A stretch of DNA of 62,975 nt, counting the filler, from Choristocarpus tenellus KU-1152 (Eukaryota > Protista > Phaeophyceae), in NCBI GenBank assembly GCA_964200185.2. It is 9 parts of 9 records of this genome, joined end to end, with 100 filler letters (N's around TTAATTAATTAA, not from the genome) between each part and the next. Parts side by side here need not be neighbours in the genome. Positions count along the whole stretch, not along the records: positions 28,700 to 50,153 come from CAXNAD020000341.1; 8 more parts are not named here. One strand, given 5' to 3'. Below are positions 28,700 to 50,746 of the stretch, one piece after another. The notes below the pieces were generated by a model. The model saw only the letters and a list, made by a program, of their open reading frames with translations, was not told where the DNA came from and ran no database searches. Position numbers and translations under genes: made by a program. Numbering within the stretch: the stretch's first letter is position 1; each line of letters opens with the position of its first letter.

Positions 28700-28862
28700 A
28701 AGCCAAGCCCAAATGGACAAACAGGGCAAAACTTGTACTCTCTAAGATACTTTCACTCCTAAACATTTTGGAGTAGGAAAATGTCATAGAACAACCCATG
28801 GGAAGCCAATCCCCAAATGAACAAAAAGGGCAAAACTCGTACCCTCTAAGATACTTTCACTC
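28700..28862 (-). mobile_element. Two tandem partial MITE family A ends
   Basis: ...CTCTAAGATACTTTCACTC ends at ~28758 and ~28862. Confidence 0.8.
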
Positions 28863-32255: not shown

Positions 32256-33466
32256 TTATCACGCCAGGCAGAGGGGGGTGTACACGTTCGTTACAATCTT
32301 CTACGCCTTAGTCCACCTTAAACCATATCGAAGTGTTTGCACTTGGGAATGTCTTCGGAATGGTCTTCTTCCCAGTCCCCAAATTTGTCTGAACCAACAC
32401 TTCTTTCGTAAGAGTCGGGGGGTCAAGGCTGGGACTTCCTCTCCTAACCACTTCAAGAATCCAGGCCCCGCCACATCCTTGTATGTTTGCGTTGTTAAGG
32501 CATGTCTCTCATTCCGTGAAACTGTGGTTCCGCATTCCTTCACGGACCTCGCCGCATAGGCGATGGGAACGGCTTGGTACGACTTCAAATGAGGGACCGT
32601 CATCTGTGAACAGCATGAGAGCACAGCACTCAACTCGAAGCCTAGACCCGTAACTGCATCCTCATAAGCCATGATTCAGTGCTTAAGAATTTTGTATCGG
32701 TATTGGCTATCCATAGATGTAACGGTGGAATGTTGTGATGGTAATAATGAGACGTTTTGTACAATAAATGGCGTTCCCATGGTCAAAATAATATATATAT
32801 ATATATAGATGTGATATTTGATAGTGGTGAAGTAACTGATTAGTGGTTTCCACGCAATGTCTTATAGTATTCTTATGTTTAGGACATTTTATATACACAT
32901 ATGTATATATTGCTTCATTATACAGTATCAGATATGACAAGAGCCGTAAAGTTGTAGCACAAGGACTGAAGTCTCTCCCGGCTGAAGCCGAGGTTTTTAA
33001 CCAAAAAGGGGACTATAAATTAGTATCATTTTAAACCACCTTAGCATGTACACTTATAATACATCACGTTGAATGCCTTTGCATAATCTCTATATAGTTT
33101 TCATTGGTTTCCCCCTGACACATCTGCAAAATGTCAGAGGGCATAATAATATAATATATATATAGTACAACTCCCACAACCGTCCTGTTCTCTTTTTCCC
33201 ATCAGGATCTTCAATGAAAAGCAAACCAAACGGCAAAAAAAAATCCTTCATATATAAAGAGTTGTAGTTAATGAAGATGTGAAAAAAATCTTGTTTCTTC
33301 ATTAGGACTACAAAAAGTTATGTTACATTTAATTCCAAATCTAAGAAGTACATCACGACACCTTTGACATGACACCTTATTTTCGAACGCTATTGTTGAT
33401 CAACCAACAAAGGCACAGGAATTCCCACACACACTATTGTACCCATACTTTACTGCATACCTTCAG

Positions 33467-36400
33467 ATGAAGGTACCCGATGTGATTGTTTTATGGGTGG
33501 CAGCATTGCTATCGAAGCCACCTGCAGTAGTCAAAGCATTCGTGCCACCCCGCCCCGTCGTGTCTAGACCGCATCGCATTTTTGGGGTCAACACGGAACG
33601 CACGAACCAGGAGGTTAAGGACCTTCCAGATTCGCAAGACCTTGCCGGCGTTGTGAGCAAGTACCCCCGTCTACTGGAAAAAGTCAAAGACAACATAATG
33701 GAGGGAAATGCGGGCGAGCGGGGAGAAGAGTTCGCACTTGCCCAGGGAGCTATCTTGCTCTGTCTTACCATTGGAAGCGTACGTAATCTTCCCTCGCTTT
33801 GTTTGCCAGGGAATAAACATAGGAACCAAAGCCCAGGCCCCACCCATCAGACACTAGGCAATGCTATCATTGGTATAATTGAGAATTCTGTTGTCTATTG
33901 ATACCAACATCGTATTTCCTTCCCTTCTCTCATTTGATGTATACACCACGCCATGGCTGAATTGCTCTACACTTTCTTACCCCTTGTGTCACGAGTAGGT
34001 GCCTCTGGTGGGCAATATTTTGGAGTTTATCGCTGGTCCAGGGATGATGGCGGGCGGTATTGGCTTAGGTGCAGCTGGACTGGTGGGGCTCGGAGGGAGT
34101 TTGTCACCATGGCCAGCCCCAGTGGATGATAACGAACTTCAGAAGTCTGGGGCCTTTGGATTGATGCGGCACCCAACCTACACGGGTGAGTTAAGAATCC
34201 GATACCTGTTACGGGTGGATTGCGTTCTTGTTGTTTGCCTTAGCTGCTGTGCTAACCTTACAGGTGCTTCTTCTGGCAACAGTACTCTGATTTACTCTAC
34301 TAGCGATTGGTCGAGTCACCCAGTCATGTACCATACTTCCGTCGTTGCTCCCAACCTCTTTCTCGATGTGTGCCTCAATATGTGAGACTTTCAACGGTAT
34401 GACAAGGGTTAGAGGGGTGTGGGAGGGAACATGTCCGCCACAGATTTGGTGAAAGTTGGAAAACTCCATTAAGAAAAATGCCCCTTCAGTGGGTCATGTT
34501 GTGCGGAAAGATCCGCAATTTAGTGAAGGCTCAAGGGTAGAGTATGAAGCGAAATCAAGTGTTTCTATTAAAGAATAAACTACAGAACGTTACATTCCTG
34601 TGTTAATCCTTTGGTGATACTATAGTACAGTTTCAAATTTGACCAGACGTCAAATATGGTTGAAATACTTTTGTGCCAATGGAACAGACACACATGAGGA
34701 TGATAACAATCAGCATTGGCTTAGATGCAGCTATGTATGACATTATTTGTCATCAGCACTCATGGGACCTTGGGCATTGTTGAATATCGTGATCACTCCA
34801 TATATACACATATATGTACATCAAGACACATCTTAAGTGAGCTTTCCTCACGTAAATGCCACGAGCCTGCTAGGAAACTGTAAAAAAGTTTTCACAAAAC
34901 TTGGCACTTTTTTACATTTATAGCATGTGGGAATCTGTCACGCATGCATGGGCCTTTCACATGCAATTCAGACATGATTGCATATGTACACCTTAGTATG
35001 GTATTGGTAGGAATGAGGAGGGTTCATTCAATACTAGTACTACAATCTGTACAAAATCGTAACAAGACTGTGAAGCAGGTACCCATCGCCACCTAATAGA
35101 GAGATGTAGCAACTGATACAGCTATCTATCAACCAATTCCTGACCAATTCATCAGTAAGAAAAAACGTGAAGAGTCATAACATCAACAGGCATTCGTGCA
35201 GCAATCCACTGCTGGTACTGTGACCCTACTCCACACCTTGGAATTTGATTGATTACCAGGCCTGATAATGTTTGCACTAGGACTGGGTGTTGCTACGGAC
35301 TCTCCTTCGCGTATTCTATTGACAGCGCTTCTTTGGTGAGTGGCGCATGTCTAAATGATTGCAGGGAGCATAGTGGAGAAAATTAGTGAAGGGGGGGGGG
35401 AACATATTGTCTGAAAAACATTTTTCCAACCTCTTCAGCTGAAGTTGAAAGTGCAATTATTATTTGAAGTAAATACTGCACTAGATTGTTCGAAGTACAT
35501 GCTAAAGCACAGCGTTTTGGAGGTCCCAATACCTTTTTTATGCTCAGATTTTTACACTATCAGCACTAGAAGGGGCACTCACAACAACAGCTATTCCCAT
35601 CATTCTTGTTGCATCTGGAAGTATCTTTGCCACCGTTCCCCAATCTCATTCCTCATCGACCTGGATGTGTGTTGGGCGTATGGTGACCTTGCCTTGGACC
35701 TCATGCCAATGAATCCAGTAGTCACTTGTGTTATTTAGCTTAAACCTGGTGCAGTTGAGGATCTGTGGTGTGATCTATCCTCTGCAGTGCAGCTAAGTTT
35801 GCTATGATGCCAAAAGGCTGAATGCATTGTCTTCTCAAAGTCTCACCGCTTTGAATTGACCATGATATGTTGTGCATTGGTTGTTATGCTTCCATGTTGG
35901 AGCATGAAAGTGTACTAGTATAAGCTCTGCTTACAGATTTTTCATTCGGCAGGTTCCCAAAACAAGCTTCAAGGGAAGCATTCTTATGATAGATTAATCG
36001 CGTTCCCTCTTCCATGTGACATATTGAAGGTGGTTTAGGATTGTTGAGAGTTTAAGAAGGGCTACCCTGAACTACTCACACCTCGTACCTCATGTATGTG
36101 TGCACTCAAGGAGACTCTCTAAAGAGGAAAGATTCCCTTGCTAACCATGACCAAACGTTACTGTGAATAAGAGAAGTATAGTAGAATGTGATGTATTGAG
36201 ATTAAGGGACTTAGACGGACAAAAACATTATGTTGACTCAATGTGTATGTAGGTATCCTATTGATTCAAATGTTGATTTTCATACATAACCCCAACCTCA
36301 TCAATCTTGGCACTCACTATATGTCCATATATCCTGTCCTAACGTACATAGCTCAGTAGTTTGAATTACACTTCGGTGCAGTATATACTGCACTTTCAAG

Positions 36401-40783: not shown

Positions 40784-43700
40784 TTAACCCTTTGGTGGGG
40801 CCTCAGGGTGAGCTGCAGGAGCCATGGATTCCTTGAGGGCGGCGAGGAAGTCACCAACAGACTCCTGCTCAATCGCCATCTGTTCCACAGCAGCTGGGGT
40901 GAGTTGTGTTACGGGCCCCTCGTGGGGGTCTTTGAGTATACTTTGGAGGTTGTCCTTGTGTTCCTCCAAGACGGAATCCTTGTAGTAGTGCTGCATCATT
41001 TCCAAGGCAGCAGGGTACCTTTGGGAGTCAATGTGTTTGTGCGGGTGGGTGTTATTTTTTGGTGGGGAGGTTAAGGATTAACACGAATTTCTAAATACAA
41101 AGTGCTAGTGGAGAGTCTGGGAGAGGTATCAAGTTTGGTTCGGGCTACTGGAAAAGGGTTGCCATTTGAGAACAACTGCTGAAAGCAGGCTAATAGAAGA
41201 AGTGGCAACAGGGAATTGGGTCAGCCCTTTGGTTGCTGAGTTCCATAGTGGCTGTCGTGTATGACACTTGAGAACATATCGCCAACTACAACATCAGAAT
41301 AATTTGTTTCACATACATACCCATACTAGGAAAACATAAATATGTAGCAATATTTAGCAAATCATTTGTTCTTTCTGGGAAATTATATGCATAGTTCTAC
41401 GGAGAATCTTGAGTGTACTCCACCACTACATTATTCACACAGTGCAACAGTCTTGAACATTTGCCTTGAATTCTGAAGCAGGCCTTAGAATACAACCCCC
41501 TAACCACTACAGATGCATAAAATGGAGTGTTCTTGTACTAGACAAATATGTAATGTAGTCCTTGATGAAATGGATTAACAGTGGTACTATGTTGGAGTCG
41601 GTAATAATATCAGTGTTGGGGTTTGATTAATCCAACAATGGGAATGGGACAAGGGTCTAACAAACAGGCTAGGAAGTGAGGGGGGCAAGATCAATTTGAG
41701 TAGCAGTATAGTGTAGTCTCGTTGAGAAGTGCTTGCCGGTGAGAGGTTCAATTTTCTATGACAGTAGGCAATATAAATTTGGTGTTGCCTCATGTCATCA
41801 TGAAGGGTGGGGTAAGGCTCACTTTATAAAGTCCAATAGGATGATCTTGTCAATACGTCCTGGTCGGATGAGAGCTGTGTCAAGACGCTCAGGGTGGTTT
41901 GTAGTCATGATAACTATTCGTCCAGGGCAGTCCACCACCCCATCCAACACATTCAGCAGTCCCGCCAGGTCTAGCCTGTCAGAGGGACCCATGAACAAAC
42001 TCTTCTTGTTCGCTCTGCCTCTTCCCCTTCCTCTCCCTCCCCCGCCACCACCCATTGCACTCGCACCCATTGCCTCCACAAGTTTCACTAGTAGCTCACT
42101 GCTAGCCATACCAGTGCCATTGCATCCATGAATGTCAGCTACGGAAGTGTCTCCATCATCGTCACTGCTGCTGCTGCTAATGCTGTCAATGTCATTGTCA
42201 CTGTTTCTATTATCCTGGACACTACTGTGGTCGAAGCTGGTGTAGTCCTCATCTCCTGTACCGTACGTGCTCCCTCCACCCGGGCTCTCCCCTTTCACCG
42301 TCTTATTGCTGATGGCTTTTGCGGCAGCCTTTCCTCCCCTTTCCTCAGAATCCCCTGCCCTCTCCTCTCCCTCCCCCAAGCCTCCCCCTACCTCCACTCT
42401 GATCCTCTTATCCTCCTCCTCTACCTCCGCCTCCTCATTCTCCTTCCCCTCATCCCGCTCGTCCTCCTCCTCCACCTCCTCCTCCCACTCCTCCCTCTTT
42501 TCCTCATCCTCATCCTCATCCTCCGTTTTCTTCTTCTTCTTCTTTGATGTCATCTTCTTCTTGGGCGATTTCTTCTTTTTTTTCTCCCCATCATTCTTCT
42601 TCTTATCCTTCTTCCGTTGTTCCCTTTCCTTCCTCTTGTTTTTGACCTTCTTCTTGTTGATGCCTCTTGAAAGAACAATAGGATTGGTGGCGTCGACGTC
42701 TTCCATCACAAAGATCACGTCCTTGAAGCCCAGTTTCACAGGGAGGTCTTCTCCCATCACATTGTAGGTCTGATCATAGACCAAGTCCATCAGTTGCTGG
42801 GCATTGAATGGGACATTACACGGGTATGTGCAAAATGTGTGACAAAATTAGACATCCACAGCGAACAAGGTGTGTGACTGTGACTTGGAGGTGCAGAGTT
42901 TGAGGCTGGTTGATGCAAGTGTGATTAGAAGATAATTTTACACATACATGTGCTGCTCTCTCTCCCCCACACCTTCTTACCATACACACGGATCGAGGTG
43001 TGAACATTGCTCGCACCCCCCTTCAACCCAGCCTCCCTAAAACTGTCAGCTTGTGTAAGCAATTTCCCACTGAATGTAAGATATTATATGAGATTGTATA
43101 CAGGCACATAAGCTACCATGGTACCCACGGCACAAGCTGACACAGTTACAGGACTAGACTATCCAAATGATCCTAGCAAGAGACACAGAGGCTACACACA
43201 CATGCACACTGCAAACCTGATTGGTGGTGATTCGAGCAAGGGGCACAGAAATTATGCTGCGCTTAGTATGACACGCAAGTGCCTTGATAAGTGACGTCTT
43301 TCCTGTGCCAGGTGGGCCATGTAGTAAAATACCAAGCTTGTGAGGATAGCCCTTAATGGCATATAGACCTGGCAGTTAGTTGAGAGAGAGTTTGGAAGGA
43401 GTGTAGGTGAGATGAGGGACAACCAAGTACTCCGCTAAATATTGTTCTGATCCTATTTGACCGTTAATCGTGGATCATTTCGGTACACATGCAACCTCTT
43501 TATTGAACTCAGCTAAATCAAGTTCTCATAATAGCCTGTCAGTGAGCAGCTCGATGACCACGAACTCATTATGTCAGAGGATAGGCTTGTAGGGAAGTGG
43601 TGGCAGGACGGGGGGGGGGAAGACACGGTAGTTCTGGAGAGAAAGTGAAGTAAGATTGAGAACAGATAAGTTCCATAGTATGTTTCCTACACCTTGATTC

Positions 43701-46700
43701 TTAATAAAAGACCAAAGGTCTTGATATTCTACAACTTTTTAGTAAAAGAAGCATCAGGGAAAAGTTGCCTTATTCTCACAACTCAAACATTGTTTTCTAT
43801 GTGTTCAAATAAAGATAGAAGCCCATAAGCACCAAAAAACGCATTCCACAGTAGAAAAAGCCCCACACCCACCCCCTCCATGCTCTGGACTAAATATTAA
43901 CTGCACTAGTAGTGCAGTGTAACCCCTATGCATTCCGTAGTAGTGACCTACTCTTGAAAAGAAACCTTACCACTCCTGTCCTCAAAGCGCTTCAGCAGTG
44001 CAAGAAGTTTATCCTTCTCCGGGAAGAAGAGGGTGTCAAAGTCTTTATCGTCTGTAAGCTTGTACCTCTTGTATCTTCTTTGTCCACATTGGGAAGATCG
44101 GAAATTAGAGACCAGCAAACGAGATAGGGTACAGCAAAAAAACGAAAATAGTCAGTCAGCCAGAGACACAGACAGACCAAGACAGCCTAGGTTAAACATT
44201 GTACGTGGAGTATGTTCACATTCACATGTAGAACCGGAGTGACACCATAGTAGTCTGGGGTGATACACATAATACTCTGAAGTGTTTGTTTGGCCTGATA
44301 CAAATGCAATCAACTGACTGAGAGCACGATTAAAGCAGTAACATCAGAAAGCGAGACTCATAACAAAATAAATGCAAGAGCCTCCAAAGTGGTAAAAGCA
44401 TACAATGCAGAGGTCTCCCTTTCTACAGAGTGTATGTGTTGTATAACTCGCGAGGGCTTTGGAGTACCCATAAAGCCCTTGCAGTGCGAGGGGTCTCTCC
44501 AAAAACAATTGTAACAAAAAAGGGAGCATTCAACATGAAGCGGTTGGTCCATCAACTCAAAATAAAGCTGACTGGAAGAGAAAAGGATAGAACTGAATGG
44601 AGGGCAAAGGAACGGACTGCCAGGAAGAGTTGGGAGCTATCATTGTTTTTTTATAGGACTCTTCTCAGAAAAACTTTGCAACCCATACACATACACACAC
44701 AGTTCATAAATAACTGCCGAATAACATATGTATTAGTGCATGGACGGCGTACTTTATCAAGTCCGACGACCCCCTCTCTGAACAGGCACCGTCCGAATTA
44801 TCATGGCCTCCAGTATCGGCATCATCATCATCAGAGAGGAGTGTGTACAGGTGGCGTCCATGGTCCTCCCTCCTGGTCATCTCGGCCTTGTACCATTCAA
44901 ATGCCTGCAGGGGTTAGGTTTTGTTGGAGTGATTAAAGTTCATACAAATATTTGAGTTAGGAGCAGGGTTCTTGAAGGAAAACTTCTACCTGGAACTATA
45001 CTACAAAAAAAAAACACAACAGAAGTAGTCTTAACCATTGTATATTGCATGGATGAGGGAAAGGGGGGGACTGGGGTGGCTGAGGTTGGTGTTCAGACTG
45101 GTTGCAGCGATGTGGATGGTTTTGGGGTGGGGGAGTGGGGTGACTATTATTCAGCTCGTTGTCCAAGTAGCAAGGTGTTCAGATAAGGCCGCAACATGGA
45201 AGGTACTTCAAAAAAAAGAAGACTGGTCAATTGCCTTGCCGTATGATAAATTGTTGTGATATGTGTAATGAGAGTACAAGACAAAAATCTCCATCCTCTC
45301 CAGATACTTCCTCTCTCATTTTCAACAAATGTAACACGAATTTTGTGTTCCATAACCGTTTTCTCTGCTTCTCCTGTACTGAGTCAGTCGCCTATTGCTC
45401 TCTTCCATATGGAGTTATGCTGAATCGTTATACGATGATTATTTCCCATACTTCTAGTACATCAGTACAGACTTTGGAAAAGTCGAATTATGATCTTAGT
45501 GACTCCACCTACCCTCACCACCCCTTCCGACATTTTTTTTCCTTGTCTTCTTTGGCGGTAGGGTTACGCCTTACATGGAAATGGTCAAACAGCAGTCCTA
45601 AAAGGCCAATACTGAACAGGTATATCATCCCAAAGGCGTACCTTGAGCATGAAGGCATTGATGCGCTTGTCACCATCTCCTTGGTTACAGAGAAATTCGT
45701 ATACCACCTGAAGAAGTGAAGGGTGGAGAGAGCCAAGGACAGCAGAGTGGCACAGGTCAAGTGATTGGACCTTCCTTGAGGCAACAAGGAAGGGGGAGCA
45801 TTCTGTCAATGGGTTTCACTTCAAAGCTGTTGCTCAATTTGTTTCACTGATCTGAGAAGAAAGAACTCCCAATTACCCGGTTTTCCTTCCAAATCATTTG
45901 CGCCATTTTGAATTTCAGACGTGAAAAATCAGACGTTTAATACAACTACAATAGTGACAGGACAAAATATAAATTACGAAACACTACCTTCTTTTTGTTG
46001 TCCATATTATCTATGACGTACAATATTGGACTGTGCATGGAGGATGGAAGCAAGTGAAAACCATGTCAAAATTACTACACAGGTGATTGTGAGGTAGAGG
46101 TAGTACAGGCACCTACAAGTCCTAGCCGTCTTACCGATTTCTTCTTGTGAACTGTTCTATCTCTGTGATGATGAAGTGAGGACTCTTCGCCTTTCAACAC
46201 TGTCTCACTATTGAACTTTACGTTTGACAATGGACAGGAGTAAGTGGTAATTCCGAACGCAGCCCCACCCCAGGAGGGTGGCGGGCATGGTTGTCGGGGA
46301 TAGGGGGCAAACGGTCGGTTTTTGTTTAGAGAGAGGGTGAGGTGAGGGGAATCTGCTTGCATAATACTCCTTACTGAAAGTGCTTTGGTACAATGGATAA
46401 GAAATCAAACAAGACAATGTCGGATGGAAAGCTAGGACAGTGGTAGAGAATGGTGGTGCATGGTACACACGGTAGCCCAAGCCTTTCAGACTGTGGTAGA
46501 GATTGAGACTGGTCCATGGGTTGTGATTCTAGTAGTTCTCATTACACTTTCAGTATAGAGACAGATCTCTCACCTGGCGAAAGTATATGTGATCTTCTAT
46601 GTGTACCCACATCATATCGGGTGGGATGGTGGTCACCTGACATGAATGTACATGTACGGGGTATGTAAGTATAAGCAGTACGTGCAATTGATTGTGCTCA

Positions 46701-49172
46701 TGATTTCAACCCTCTATGGTCGCCTGCCCGCATGTTTCCACATTATTCGGTACCTGTATTGTTCTATCATGAATTAAAAGCTGATGGAATTGGTACTTCT
46801 AAAGTTCATGCTAGAAATGATGTTCATTCAATGTTTAAAGATTTTTATACTGCGGCATTACCTAATGCCCAAAAATTTGATGATATTCATTTATGTATTC
46901 CCGTTGGTTGGTGGGTTACTGAAGGAGATAGTGGAGGGAATGTGCAATTATACCCAAATTATAAGCTCTGTATTTGCAATGCAGAGTGATTAACTTGCTA
47001 CTATTGGCTCTCTACGTGTCATATCTAACAAGGCTTCTTCTCCACCTTTTTCATATAACTCTTGGAATCTATAGTAACTATCTCTGCTATAACCCATTGT
47101 CTACATGCTGCTGATATGTTGCCTAAACTTTTTGCAAGCTCTAATAATCCTACACAATTATGCAGTTTCAGACGTAGACTTACCTAGCGGCGTTAAAGTA
47201 GTTGCCAAATCCTTATTTGATAATACCATTCAGGCCATAGCAAACCCTGATTACAAATCTATAAGTTTTCAAGGACATCCTGAAGCTGGTCCTGGCCCGA
47301 GAGATTGTTATTACATATTTGACTATTTCCTTAAACAAATTAATAAATACTAATTATGCCAAAAGATAAAAGTTAAAAAATATATTAGTAATTGGCGCTG
47401 GACCTATAGTAATCGGTCAAGCCTCTGAATTTGATTATTCTGGTACACAAGCTTGTAAAGCATTAACTGAAGATGGATATGAAGTAGTTTTGATTAATTC
47501 TAATCCAGCGAAGGCTCTATGAGCAAACAGTGAACAAGCGATGAAGTATGTATACCTGACCCACAAACAGGGCTTCTGTGGTTGTCGTTACAATGAACCT
47601 CCGTGGTTCAGAGTTCGGGATGGTCAAGACTTTGATCCACACATGGCATGCCATAAGAAGAAATGAGGATGGAAAGGCGTAGAGGGTTGTAGTGCTTTTC
47701 ATTTTGCCAACACCCAAGTATAACTTGTAGGCTAGGCTGCAACATGTTGACCTCGCCAGGCATTTGTCTTTGGTAACCTCTGAGTAGCTTTCAGTCCCTA
47801 AGCAATACTTCTACTACTTTGTTACTAACTGGAATTCTATTGTGAAAACCCCCAAGCAGAATACACTACCAACGACTCTTTTGTGATGTAAACACGTCAA
47901 ATTCAAATCATCTACCACAGGCAATAAATTTAAACTTGATCTGAACACTTGCAACACCATTATTTGCCAACTCTCTACCTCAATCCATGTTTCTGTAGCA
48001 CACAAACAGTAACATTTCTCAAACACATGCTTAGGTTGATGCCACCAATCTGTCCAACCTAAGGAGACAAGGAGGTTGGATGTAGGGTTCTTGATAGGTC
48101 TCACCTCATAAGCCTTGAGTTGGTCTGAGGTATCACCATAAACTACGCAGCCATCCCACGAATCTTCATACTTAGCCTTTTCCTTGATAGAGGTCAGCAG
48201 CACTTTTCCCTTCCTGAATGGTAGATTCATCTGCTTCACCAGAGGAGAAGGTGGATTGGAGTGAGGAACAAGAAAGGACACATCGTGTAGGTGAGGAAGG
48301 GGTCATTAGTCAAACCCTAACCCCGACAAGGACACAAGCTCATGGGGCATGACTCTGGATGAACTTTCCTACTTTCCTTGTTTGATCACTTTTGAGTACA
48401 CTTCCTGCTCTTTGGCATATCGGACATGCTTACCTGACCAATATAAAGCATGACAGCCTTCTGAATGATGTTGTTCCGAGAACCCTCCATCTCATCACTG
48501 TCTCTGCTGTTGTGGTTGTGCGTACTCTGGAGCACGAAACGATCGGGGCAGGCGAAGAAGAGAAGGGATAACATGCGTCAGTGGGGATAGAGGTGAGGGT
48601 GGGATATAGAAGAAACGGAGTCAACTATTGCTGAGGCAAGATTTGGCATAAGACTCTTGCAACAGGAGTGGCAATCCTTTTTCTCATGTGAATTTTAAAG
48701 TTCGTGCTACTGTAAAATTTCTTTCACTAATTGTGTCTGGAAATATTGAAAATACCGCAGGTACCACACCCTGCTCTGCCTCAATTTCACCAGGCATCTC
48801 CTTCCCAGGCACAAATTGTCCGAACTCAACTTTCCTCCTTCCTAACATATACTTCAAGGAACCTACTATCTAAACCACTCATTACTGTTGTCAAGTCAAT
48901 CTTACGTCGAATTATTGGCCCATCAAGGTATAGAGATTTCATGGAATAATGTATCGGGCTCATCGACCAACACTCGCCTTCTCGAAGATTACCATACGTC
49001 GGAAGGCCCTGCCCTGCACTAGATGCGCCGAACGTTCCTTGAAATATTGACCACCAAAAACAAATGCCGCAATAACTCCGTTGATAACAAGGGGGATGCA
49101 AAGGGCAACAATCATGTCCGTCACCACATTGCCCGTCCTCAAGGCGTTGAGGATGCCCACCTGCATGTTCAT
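40784..49172 (-). CDS. BCS1-like AAA+ ATPase; exons 49172-48978, 48526-48434, 48230-48105, 46636-46574, 46215-46135, 45707-45642, 44904-44753, 44074-43971, 43368-43217, 42796-41823, 41018-40784
   Basis: Eleven exons join in frame. N-terminal TM helix ([17 protein letters not shown]), [16 protein letters not shown], Walker [12 protein letters not shown], Walker [10 protein letters not shown], and [40 protein letters not shown]. The start codon is tentative. Confidence 0.9.
46759..46930 (+). pseudogene. Fragment of a DegT/DnrJ/EryC1/StrS-family sugar aminotransferase C-terminus (foreign, intronic)
   Basis: [53 protein letters not shown] fits the family C-terminal pattern (L...GI....H......LP......hh.IP....T); AT-rich codons. 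Confidence 0.6.
46993..47153 (-). pseudogene. IS481-family transposase N-terminal (HTH) fragment, frameshifted
   Basis: [18 protein letters not shown][-1][32 protein letters not shown] matches the GLLxLAxxLGNVSxACxxMGYSRDxFYR signature of IS481 elements. Confidence 0.85.
47153..47353 (+). pseudogene. carA: Bacterial carbamoyl-phosphate synthase small subunit, 3' fragment
   Basis: HNYAV..LP...[10 protein letters not shown].....[24 protein letters not shown]; stop at 47351-47353. Confidence 0.92.
47356..47510 (+). pseudogene. carB: Bacterial carbamoyl-phosphate synthase large subunit, 5' fragment with frameshift
   Basis: ATG 2 bp after the carA stop; MPKDKS[-1][45 protein letters not shown], then an abrupt end. 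Confidence 0.95.
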
Positions 49173-50746
49173 CAAGGACAGATCGAAGGTGGGGAATGTC
49201 AGCTACTCGTCTGATCGCCGTTTGTTATGACTGATAGAGGGTAGAAGACACTTCTCAAAGATACGTTAGCCTCACCATTCCTCCCAGGCTCAACCCAACA
49301 GAATTGCGCATAATGTACAGGATTATCAAAGTGTGTCTATTTGATAAGTACGGCACTGAGGAGTCGTACTTTGCGGGGAGCGACTTGATGGTGAGATCGA
49401 TCGTGAAGACATCCAAGTTTTTAATAGCGATTTCTCACAGCCTTGTCCTTCCCAGCGATATTGAATAAGCAGACAAAAGAGGTCTCAAATATAAATGGTG
49501 TGGCAAAGAGGAAAACACCAAGTCATCCTGTCATATTTCAATTGTTATTTACCATCACATTGACGGACCTGTGAAACGATGTCTTCCATACTGCGGTTGA
49601 AACAAAGTTGCTTATGCACCACCCACACGGACGTGTTCACCTTGTGGGTGTGGGAGTGACTCTGGTGTTGGGGGAACACCTGAAGGCAACTTACTGGGGA
49701 AATGGGAAATTGTTTTTGATCGTTAAATTCGACCAGTTCTGGATAGGTCTCGGAAAAATGGTAAAAAAAGAGGAATCGTGGTGTGTTCCTAATGGTGTAA
49801 AAATTGAGTAGTGACAATCTTATATATGTTTTTATTATTATGCCCTCTGACATTTTACAGATGTGTCAGTCAGGGGGGAAACCAATGAAAACTATATATA
49901 TGTCGTTGTCAGCCCTAAAGAAATAAAATATATTGTGATTCTTGATGGGGTCCAAAATCCACCAATTAGGAAAGTGTTTTAGGCATTATAGCAATAGTGG
50001 AGAGAAAGCGTCAGTTCAGGTCCATCTAAATATTTGCAATTTTTATATTATTATGCGGAGTGAAGTACAGTCAATGTACCTATATATATTATTATGCCCT
50101 CTGACATTTTGCAGATGTGTCAGGGGGAAACCAATGAAAACTATATACATACGNNNNNNNNNNNNNNNNNNNNNNNNNNNNNNNNNNNNNNNNNNNNTTA
50201 ATTAATTAANNNNNNNNNNNNNNNNNNNNNNNNNNNNNNNNNNNNNNNNNNNNCCCCCTCCAGGTCTGGAATCTACTGGCATTGCCCCGCTTGCATCCTC
50301 GGGTTAAGCGACCAAACGCACCACTCAGAAGGCAAGAGAATCAATCAAGCAAGAAAGAGGTTTGATCACTAACTACATTGCAGGGTGCGTACTTAGAAAG
50401 CCAGAACAGTCGGTACCCAATGTCAAGGGCACCTACCATAAGAGATGCGCATCCTATCGCTGCGCACACCACACAAGGCATGCATGCATGCAGCTTACCG
50501 TGTGCCCTACTGCTACTCACACTCGCAAAAAAAAAAAAAAATTAAAGTTCATCGCTCGCTCGGTATACTATTTTTTTTGTTTTTACTTGAAAAAAGAAAG
50601 AGAAAGTACATCATTTGGTTTATAGTTTTTAGGGGTTTTTTATGTACAGGAATATAAACATACAAAAAAAAGCCCCCCTCGCTAACCACACGAGCAGACT
50701 ATGACATGTACCCCTTGGGTACTACCTGATACTCACTTGGGAGTAC

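Follow-up and report, generated by a model that had tools for sequence, protein, structure and literature searches.

A patchwork of truncated bacterial gene pieces in an intron of a predicted BCS1-like AAA ATPase gene of the brown alga Choristocarpus tenellus

In the genome of Choristocarpus tenellus KU-1152 (NCBI GenBank assembly GCA_964200185.2), a block of about 740 bases made up of truncated bacterial gene pieces was identified inside an intron of a predicted BCS1-like AAA ATPase gene. The whole stretch of DNA analysed, here called the window, is 62,975 nucleotides long and joins 9 parts from 9 records; the block lies in a 21-kb piece at positions 28,700 to 50,153 (CAXNAD020000341.1), and all coordinates given are those of the window. 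The block is probably non-functional bacterial DNA in the algal nuclear genome, captured as a patchwork by end joining. An earlier reading of the window, made from the sequence alone, had recognised the block and set its extent at 46759-47510; its presence held, and the borders of this AT-rich, intronic stretch, read directly and translated in six frames over 46400-48300, are refined to 46771-47511. Its components are the following:

46771-46931, plus strand: piece 1, C-terminal part of a DegT/DnrJ/EryC1/StrS sugar aminotransferase, about 53 codons (homology to metagenomic open reading frames and a phage gene)
46932-46992, no strand: filler segment of 61 bp between the DegT piece and the IS piece, without assignment
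46993-47153, minus strand: piece 2, N-terminal helix-turn-helix of a transposase of the IS481/ISRpe1 type, with a 1-nucleotide deletion near 47099 (tblastn, NCBIfam, Pfam)
47153-47353, plus strand: piece 3a, last 66 codons of carA and its TAA stop at 47351-47353 (Pfam, NCBIfam, protein P0001)
47356-47511, plus strand: piece 3b, ATG and first ~51 codons of carB, with a 1-nucleotide deletion within 47361-47374 (Pfam, NCBIfam, DNA alignment to scaffold L082)

The unrelated, truncated pieces in mixed orientation described in the sequence-only reading were each recovered at or near the place given there, far beyond chance in profile and homology searches. The strand switches between pieces, the DegT piece and carA-carB being on the plus strand and the insertion sequence (IS) piece on the minus strand, and the IS and carA pieces adjoin directly at about 47153. 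Every piece is cut at arbitrary codons, and the sole complete gene boundary is the native one between the carA stop and the carB start. Inverted or direct repeats, element ends and target duplications flanking the block were looked for and none was found. The block is a patchwork and not a mobile element, since it has no flanking repeats, its IS piece has neither ends nor a DDE domain, and its strand changes from piece to piece. No second copy of any part of it occurred within the 21-kb piece, an Rfam search over 46500-47700 gave nothing, and an exact-protein look-up of two open reading frames of the window returned zero matches. The filler at 46932-46992 showed no homology in any frame to relatives of DegT or IS481, no DNA match in the plasmid and phage collections and no Rfam match.

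The GC content of the block was 34.8%, while the flanks had 43-44%. With the reading frames set by homology, the GC content at third codon positions (GC3) was 0.11 in the DegT piece, 0.17 and 0.26 in the two frames of the IS piece, 0.27 in carA and 0.13 in carB. The sequence-only reading had taken the donor DNA to be AT-rich, and this is borne out by the pieces, with a GC content of 33-37% and a GC3 of 0.11-0.27 against 0.41-0.62 in the host exons. Because GC3 is low in all the coding pieces relative to the host exons, the donor or donors were AT-rich bacteria. The donor codon signature has been retained, and therefore little time has passed, or little mutation has occurred, since capture.

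The surroundings of the block belong to one host gene, of which the parts bordering the block are as follows:

48105-48230, minus strand: host exon upstream of the intron, ending in ...DQLKAYE (tblastn of proteins P0158, P0155 and P0157, matching 48227-48093)
46637-48104, minus strand: host intron of the BCS1-like AAA gene (direct reading, and homology of the flanking exons to P0158)
46574-46636, minus strand: host exon downstream of the intron (translation; matches P0158 residues VNIIPPNGHWVTLRENLEF)

Read directly on the minus strand, the intron begins with GT, ends with AG and is 1468 nucleotides long, of which the insert makes up about half. In P0158, a protein of Ectocarpus fasciculatus, the residues VNIIPPNGHWVTLRENLEF come immediately after ...DQLSCYS, so that the exons 48105-48230 and 46574-46636 encode consecutive residues that are uninterrupted in the Ectocarpus homologue. 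Because both flanking exons encode consecutive Ectocarpus residues, the bacterial block is truly intronic, and the location inside the intron 46637-48104 that had been proposed from the sequence is upheld by these exons together with the GT-AG ends. The gene of the Ectocarpus homologue has no intron at the position corresponding to the insert-bearing one. Homologues of the large exon at 41822-42790 are AAA/BCS1-like proteins, the best named ones belonging to Ectocarpus and Undaria and the next to oomycetes and a diatom, which places the host among the stramenopiles, near the brown algae; such homologues align to successive exons on the minus strand between about 49154 and 40823. Host exons were searched one at a time by reference; judged from these homologies, the insert-bearing gene is a predicted multi-exon BCS1-like AAA ATPase gene. 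The large exon (here taken as 41819-42790, minus strand) also carries a long low-complexity insertion rich in Lys, Glu, Asp and Ser between its AAA motifs, especially at about 42130-42650, and this insertion accounts for the extreme GC and AT skew at 42200-42650.

The insertion was recovered in Logan contigs, which are built from public reads by a different assembler and are independent of the submitted assembly. One contig of run X1, 16.7 kb long, spans 45900-48400 with zero differences from the window. Run X3 represents another sample of this organism; its 2268-bp contig spans 45900-47570 and thereby both junctions, reaching 59 nucleotides beyond the right border. The differences between X3 and the window are single nucleotide polymorphisms (SNPs) that all lie in the host flanks, at 46228 and 46737 on this contig and at 47683, 47702 and 48154 on the following ones; inside the block there are zero differences and zero indels. 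The two 1-nucleotide frameshifts reported for the IS and carB pieces were likewise confirmed, as no contig showed an indel relative to the window, the X1 and X3 contigs that span the insert included. No contig skipping the insert was found in X1 or X3. The insertion and both frameshifts thus exist in at least two genotypes. To the right of the insert, at 47571-47767, the depth in X3 dropped from 8.1 to 3.7 across a 197-nucleotide contig with two SNPs, a pattern suggestive of allelic differences within this stretch of the intron in sample S3.

Since algal sequencing often picks up bacterial contaminants and the block is foreign in composition, bacterial reads misjoined into an algal contig might be suspected. 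A chimeric assembly had indeed been named in the sequence-only reading as the outcome that would overturn it. The same junctions are, however, present in contigs of two samples from a different assembler, which cross both borders and place host sequence on both sides of the block on the same molecules (contigs, not raw reads), and the X3 contig carries host SNPs together with the insert. Host sequence runs for kilobases on either side with exons of one gene, and the pieces, at 160-360 bp, cut mid-gene and frameshifted, are unlike a contaminant contig. An assembly or contamination artefact is in our view largely refuted, and its probability is very small indeed.

The carA-carB piece was taken as the least mobile marker of the donor. 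Its carA part matched Pfam GATase (3.7e-11, profile positions 128-189 of 190) and TIGR01368 (8e-15, positions 296-360 of 361), and contains the end of a glutamine amidotransferase domain with the GHPE motif, running to the native stop. The CPSase_sm_chain domain and the catalytic Cys are absent; homology starts at 47153, with the opposite-strand IS piece upstream. The carB part matched Pfam PF25596 (CPSase_L_D1, 4.8e-20) and NCBIfam PRK05294 (3.6e-25, profile positions 8-52). Its ATG lies 2 nucleotides after the carA stop, its frame is broken by the 1-nucleotide deletion, about 95% of carB is missing, and at the DNA level carB genes match no further than 47511.

An exhaustive HMMER comparison of the carA piece with 1.84 billion protein representatives yielded one protein, P0001, at 66% amino acid identity, and all others at 54% or less. 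P0001 is encoded on a 1.7-kb metagenome scaffold (L082) of 31.9% GC, on which carA also meets carB and which is 77% identical at the DNA level over 189 nucleotides. Upstream of carA, L082 carries at 1-441 a sequence that resembles, by eye only, the C-terminus of a NodU/CmcH-type carbamoyltransferase; the proximity of a carbamoyltransferase-like gene to carbamoyl-phosphate synthesis is suggestive. In a tblastn search of PLSDB, which holds many mislabelled chromosomes and was not pattern-limited, Gammaproteobacteria came top (50.8% identity for Acinetobacter and 48.5% for E. coli, E about 1e-15), followed by Neisseria and Ralstonia; Fusobacteria and Firmicutes came next, and Sinorhizobium ranked lower still, outside the first 30 rows. 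A scan of GTDB gave matches of 41-52%, the gamma- and betaproteobacterial carA genes among them all having the ISFQGHPE motif and carB immediately downstream; the scan uses 8-residue patterns and is biased towards carriers of ISFQGHPE, and about 43 of its 68 loci belonged to class-I amidotransferases other than carA. The carA piece has the ISFQGHPE motif common to the gamma- and betaproteobacterial matches, and shares the motifs HNY and SLFDNTI with a metagenome-assembled genome (MAG) of marine Legionellales. Judged by these sequence relationships, the carA piece is of the gammaproteobacterial type and not of the alphaproteobacterial type. In the carA tree, two GTDB contigs (L033 and L034) labelled Bacteroidaceae / Parabacteroides distasonis grouped with full support beside Duodenibacillus (Sutterellaceae, Betaproteobacteria), which suggests mis-binned contigs or transfer.

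The IS piece aligned by tblastn on the minus strand in two frames with the ISRpe1 transposase of Rickettsia peacockii, amino acids 12-29 matching 47100-47153 and amino acids 30-65 matching 46993-47100, at 78% and about 70% identity. Profile searches returned NCBIfam transpos_IS481 (NF033577, 3e-4, profile positions 23-53) and Pfam HTH_29 (3.6e-6), and amino acid identity to annotated IS481 transposases was 71-81%. The match ends at amino acid 65 of 365; the DDE (rve) domain and the IS ends are absent, and the piece cannot transpose. Relatives were searched in a collection holding plasmids only, where the best matches were ISRpe1-type copies of Rickettsia (71-76% at the amino acid level and 75-78% at the DNA level, the latter over 46997-47152, where the DNA-level match ends), followed by Neochlamydia, Rhabdochlamydia, the seaweed-derived Chondrinema and Leptospira; ISRpe1-like copies also occur on Piscirickettsia plasmids. 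Such a range of matches would fit a mobilome common to host-associated bacteria.

The DegT piece covers about 54 residues before the final ~15 of the family. It is without the last ~15 codons that precede the family's usual stop and without everything upstream, the PLP-binding lysine and the large domain included, and is a fragment and not a gene. The 65-amino-acid piece by itself gave no Pfam or NCBIfam match at E<=1, being too short for Pfam. It is 62-67% identical at the amino acid level to the C-termini of metagenomic open reading frames, with 67% over 51 amino acids to the frame at 878-2014 of contig L002, which encodes a full DegT/DnrJ/EryC1/StrS aminotransferase of 378 amino acids (PF01041, 2.7e-76). 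Further tblastn matches were an annotated phage dTDP-4-amino-4,6-dideoxygalactose transaminase (44.6% identity, E 1e-8) and a plasmid DegT gene (1e-4). No relative above 67% was found in the scans of JGI metagenomes or IMG/VR.

At the DNA level, much closer copies were present in two sequencing runs. The DegT piece is 98.7% identical, over 46772/46783-46931, to a 189-nucleotide contig of the marine metagenome X6 and to a 151-nucleotide contig of X4, a run from another organism, and the two contigs share a T>C difference at 46886. To the left of 46772, the X6 contig extends with sequence unlike the window; because of this divergence, the left border of the block is fixed and the X6 contig is donor-type DNA and not alga. 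The DegT piece thus appears to come from a lineage still present in the sea. Both contigs stop 2 nucleotides past 46931, where the DegT piece ends in the alga, and this shared stop could be due to chance, to a branch point in the donor population, or to a donor DegT gene already interrupted there. A DegT-family protein 56% identical to the piece is encoded on a 178-kb IMG/VR contig classed as viral (Ga0315289_10000055, recorded as both L007 and L009), and Flavobacterium phages encode one at 44.6%; the subfamily therefore circulates in large phages.

The origin of the block may be depicted as follows: A chromosome break would have occurred inside the intron of the BCS1-like AAA ATPase gene, and its repair by end joining would have captured extrachromosomal bacterial DNA, whereby at least three short non-contiguous bacterial fragments and 61 bp of filler became joined in mixed orientation. 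The block would thereafter have been spliced out with the intron and been neutral, because it is intronic, truncated and frameshifted and is carried by two genetically different samples. We infer the repair pathway, the single event and the neutrality from the structure of the block.

Some points weigh against this interpretation. X1 and X3 come from one study, and X1 may be the assembly's own data. Local depth cannot be read from the contigs, and the records do not state the library type of X1-X3 (probably genomic DNA, given contigs of 136-245 kb). The carA tree leaves P0001 unplaced, on a long branch whose composition is odd, and no taxonomic claim is drawn from it. The metagenome, GTDB and representative searches yielded no donor genome.

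The mosaic might also have been formed before it entered the alga, as a region of scrambled pseudogenes in a decaying, IS-rich bacterial genome or as the cargo of a virus or another vector. The frameshifts and truncations could then predate the transfer, and the coincident stop of the X4 and X6 contigs 2 nucleotides past 46931, which is otherwise unexplained, would agree with it, as would the DegT relatives on IMG/VR contigs and in Flavobacterium phages. These viral relatives are, however, only 44-56% identical to the piece, against 62-67% for other metagenome contigs, and on one of the latter, L001, the neighbouring gene encodes an RluD-type pseudouridine synthase and is clearly bacterial. 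No viral contig encoding a relative of the carA piece was found in the viral scan, and the absence of flanking repeats and element ends likewise argues against a pre-formed mosaic. Such an origin is improbable, and capture by end joining at the algal locus is the reading that we retain.

The sequence-only reading had gone on to propose a single, Rickettsiales- or Holosporales-like intracellular donor, and this part of it is not borne out. According to this proposal, all the pieces would be relics of one AT-rich obligate intracellular alphaproteobacterium living in the alga. The ISRpe1-type IS481 copies on Rickettsia plasmids, which are the best plasmid matches of the IS piece, point in this direction; the low GC3 is common to all pieces, and the nucleus of Volvox carteri contains about 9 kb of rickettsial DNA (PMC4324946). 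But no piece other than the mobile IS one indicates Rickettsia or plasmids of chlamydiae; IS elements cross phyla, and the collection in which the relatives were sought held plasmids only. The carA piece instead ranks Gammaproteobacteria first and Betaproteobacteria second, with Sinorhizobium lower, has the ISFQGHPE motif seen in the gamma- and betaproteobacterial matches, and is adjacent to carB as at their loci. Rickettsia is not known to have carAB. Moreover, neither the marine metagenome nor the other organism's run in which the DegT piece has its 98.7% copies shows IS or carA pieces to match. A rickettsial relic of this kind is accordingly quite doubtful, and would be a long shot on present evidence.

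Whether the pieces share a donor of another kind is a separate matter. The pieces came from a single AT-rich bacterium or from several, whose coding DNA had a GC content of about 33-37%. The carA-carB source, by its sequence affinities, would be a long-branch lineage with a gammaproteobacterial-type carA, adjacent carA and carB, and no close sequenced relative. In the metagenome, GTDB and representative searches, no genome or contig was close to any two pieces. In X6, the conserved start of carB and the end of carA gave short matches, mostly of 85-95%, with at most two other short contigs at 95-99%, and the IS piece gave zero matches; the depth of X6 at its DegT copy is only about 3. A single donor, as claimed from the sequence, is compatible with the composition of the pieces, but the run with the 98.7% DegT copy shows no comparably close and long copy of the IS or carA pieces, and the X6 result leans slightly against it.

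One AT-rich bacterium of the gammaproteobacterial type, intracellular or on the algal surface, may nevertheless have given all pieces in one event, which we regard as a serious possibility, if somewhat short of an even chance. The pieces are alike in GC and GC3, they form a single block in which the IS and carA pieces abut directly, and the gamma-type carA forms a long branch of unusual composition, a frequent trait of host-restricted or streamlined bacteria; the motifs shared with the marine Legionellales MAG and the ISRpe1-like IS on Piscirickettsia plasmids agree with this. It is opposed by X6, which has a near-identical DegT copy without equally close IS and carA copies (at the low depth given above), by the failure to find a genome with all three pieces in the metagenome, GTDB and representative searches, and by the frequent transfer of DegT genes and IS elements, so that each piece may indicate a different taxon. 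More speculatively, and on balance rather unlikely, the block could be the fossil of a so far unsequenced AT-rich, IS-carrying intracellular bacterium with gamma-type carAB and a Legionellales- or Francisella-like lifestyle in a brown-alga-like host, with relatives in seawater and in samples of another organism; if so, it would represent a new intracellular association between alga and bacterium, detectable only through this genomic scar. The insertion is real, yet it is no demonstration of a bacterial symbiont of the alga, as implied in the sequence-only reading; the donor may have been intracellular, surface-associated or environmental.

Fragmentary bacterial DNA is known from the nuclear genomes of nematodes and insects in the form of Wolbachia nuwts, for example in Brugia malayi (PMC3849323). 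The block resembles these in consisting of short, truncated, mostly non-functional and frameshifted bacterial fragments in a host chromosome, often in non-coding DNA. It differs in that the donor of nuwts is a known resident, germline-associated endosymbiont to which the pieces can be mapped, whereas the host here is an alga, the searches gave no donor genome, and residence inside the cells is at most a possibility. The nearest algal precedent is the nucleus of Volvox carteri, where about 9 kb of syntenic DNA comprises four rickettsial genes and related endosymbionts have been sequenced from sister algae (PMC4324946). In both cases bacterial DNA is found in an algal nucleus, and the Volvox DNA was read as the trace of a past association; unlike it, the block is a scrambled set of pieces totalling 740 bp, with a carA-carB piece of a non-alphaproteobacterial type.

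Mosaics of nuclear mitochondrial and plastid DNA (NUMT and NUPT) consist of non-contiguous fragments in mixed orientation, joined together with filler at double-strand breaks, often in introns. The block shares with them the several fragments, mixed strands and filler at one site, but it does not come from an organelle; neither IS481 nor DegT nor carB is an organelle gene, and organelle-type features are absent. Functional horizontal gene transfer from bacteria accounts for about 1% of the genes in brown algae (10.1101/2024.02.19.579948). The block is likewise bacterial DNA that entered a stramenopile algal genome, but in contrast to those expressed, host-adapted genes it is raw, broken DNA with the donor composition intact, which suggests that it represents an early or failed stage of the process of bacterial gene transfer. 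Bacterial scars are well known in animals, and the present one is a further case, in a stramenopile alga and from a poorly sampled donor lineage.

By itself the block is without function, and no phenotype is expected from it. The case shows that the first step of transfer from bacterium to alga, random capture at a break, occurs in this lineage and reaches the germline. The insertion is a datable marker for comparisons of populations or species, and provides three sequence tags with which to find a bacterium with physical access to algal nuclei.

Other AT-rich stretches of the 21-kb piece (32600-33500, 49700-50153 and others) contained no bacterial-looking frames, and two open reading frames from 32600-33500 and one from 49700-50153 gave zero Pfam matches. 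These stretches are explained in part by an AT-rich host repeat of ~70-80 bp, also without a Pfam match, which is present in three copies at 33091-33164, 50081-50147 (minus strand) and 49821-49898 (minus strand), with 98.5% and 88.6% identity, and is probably a small dispersed element.

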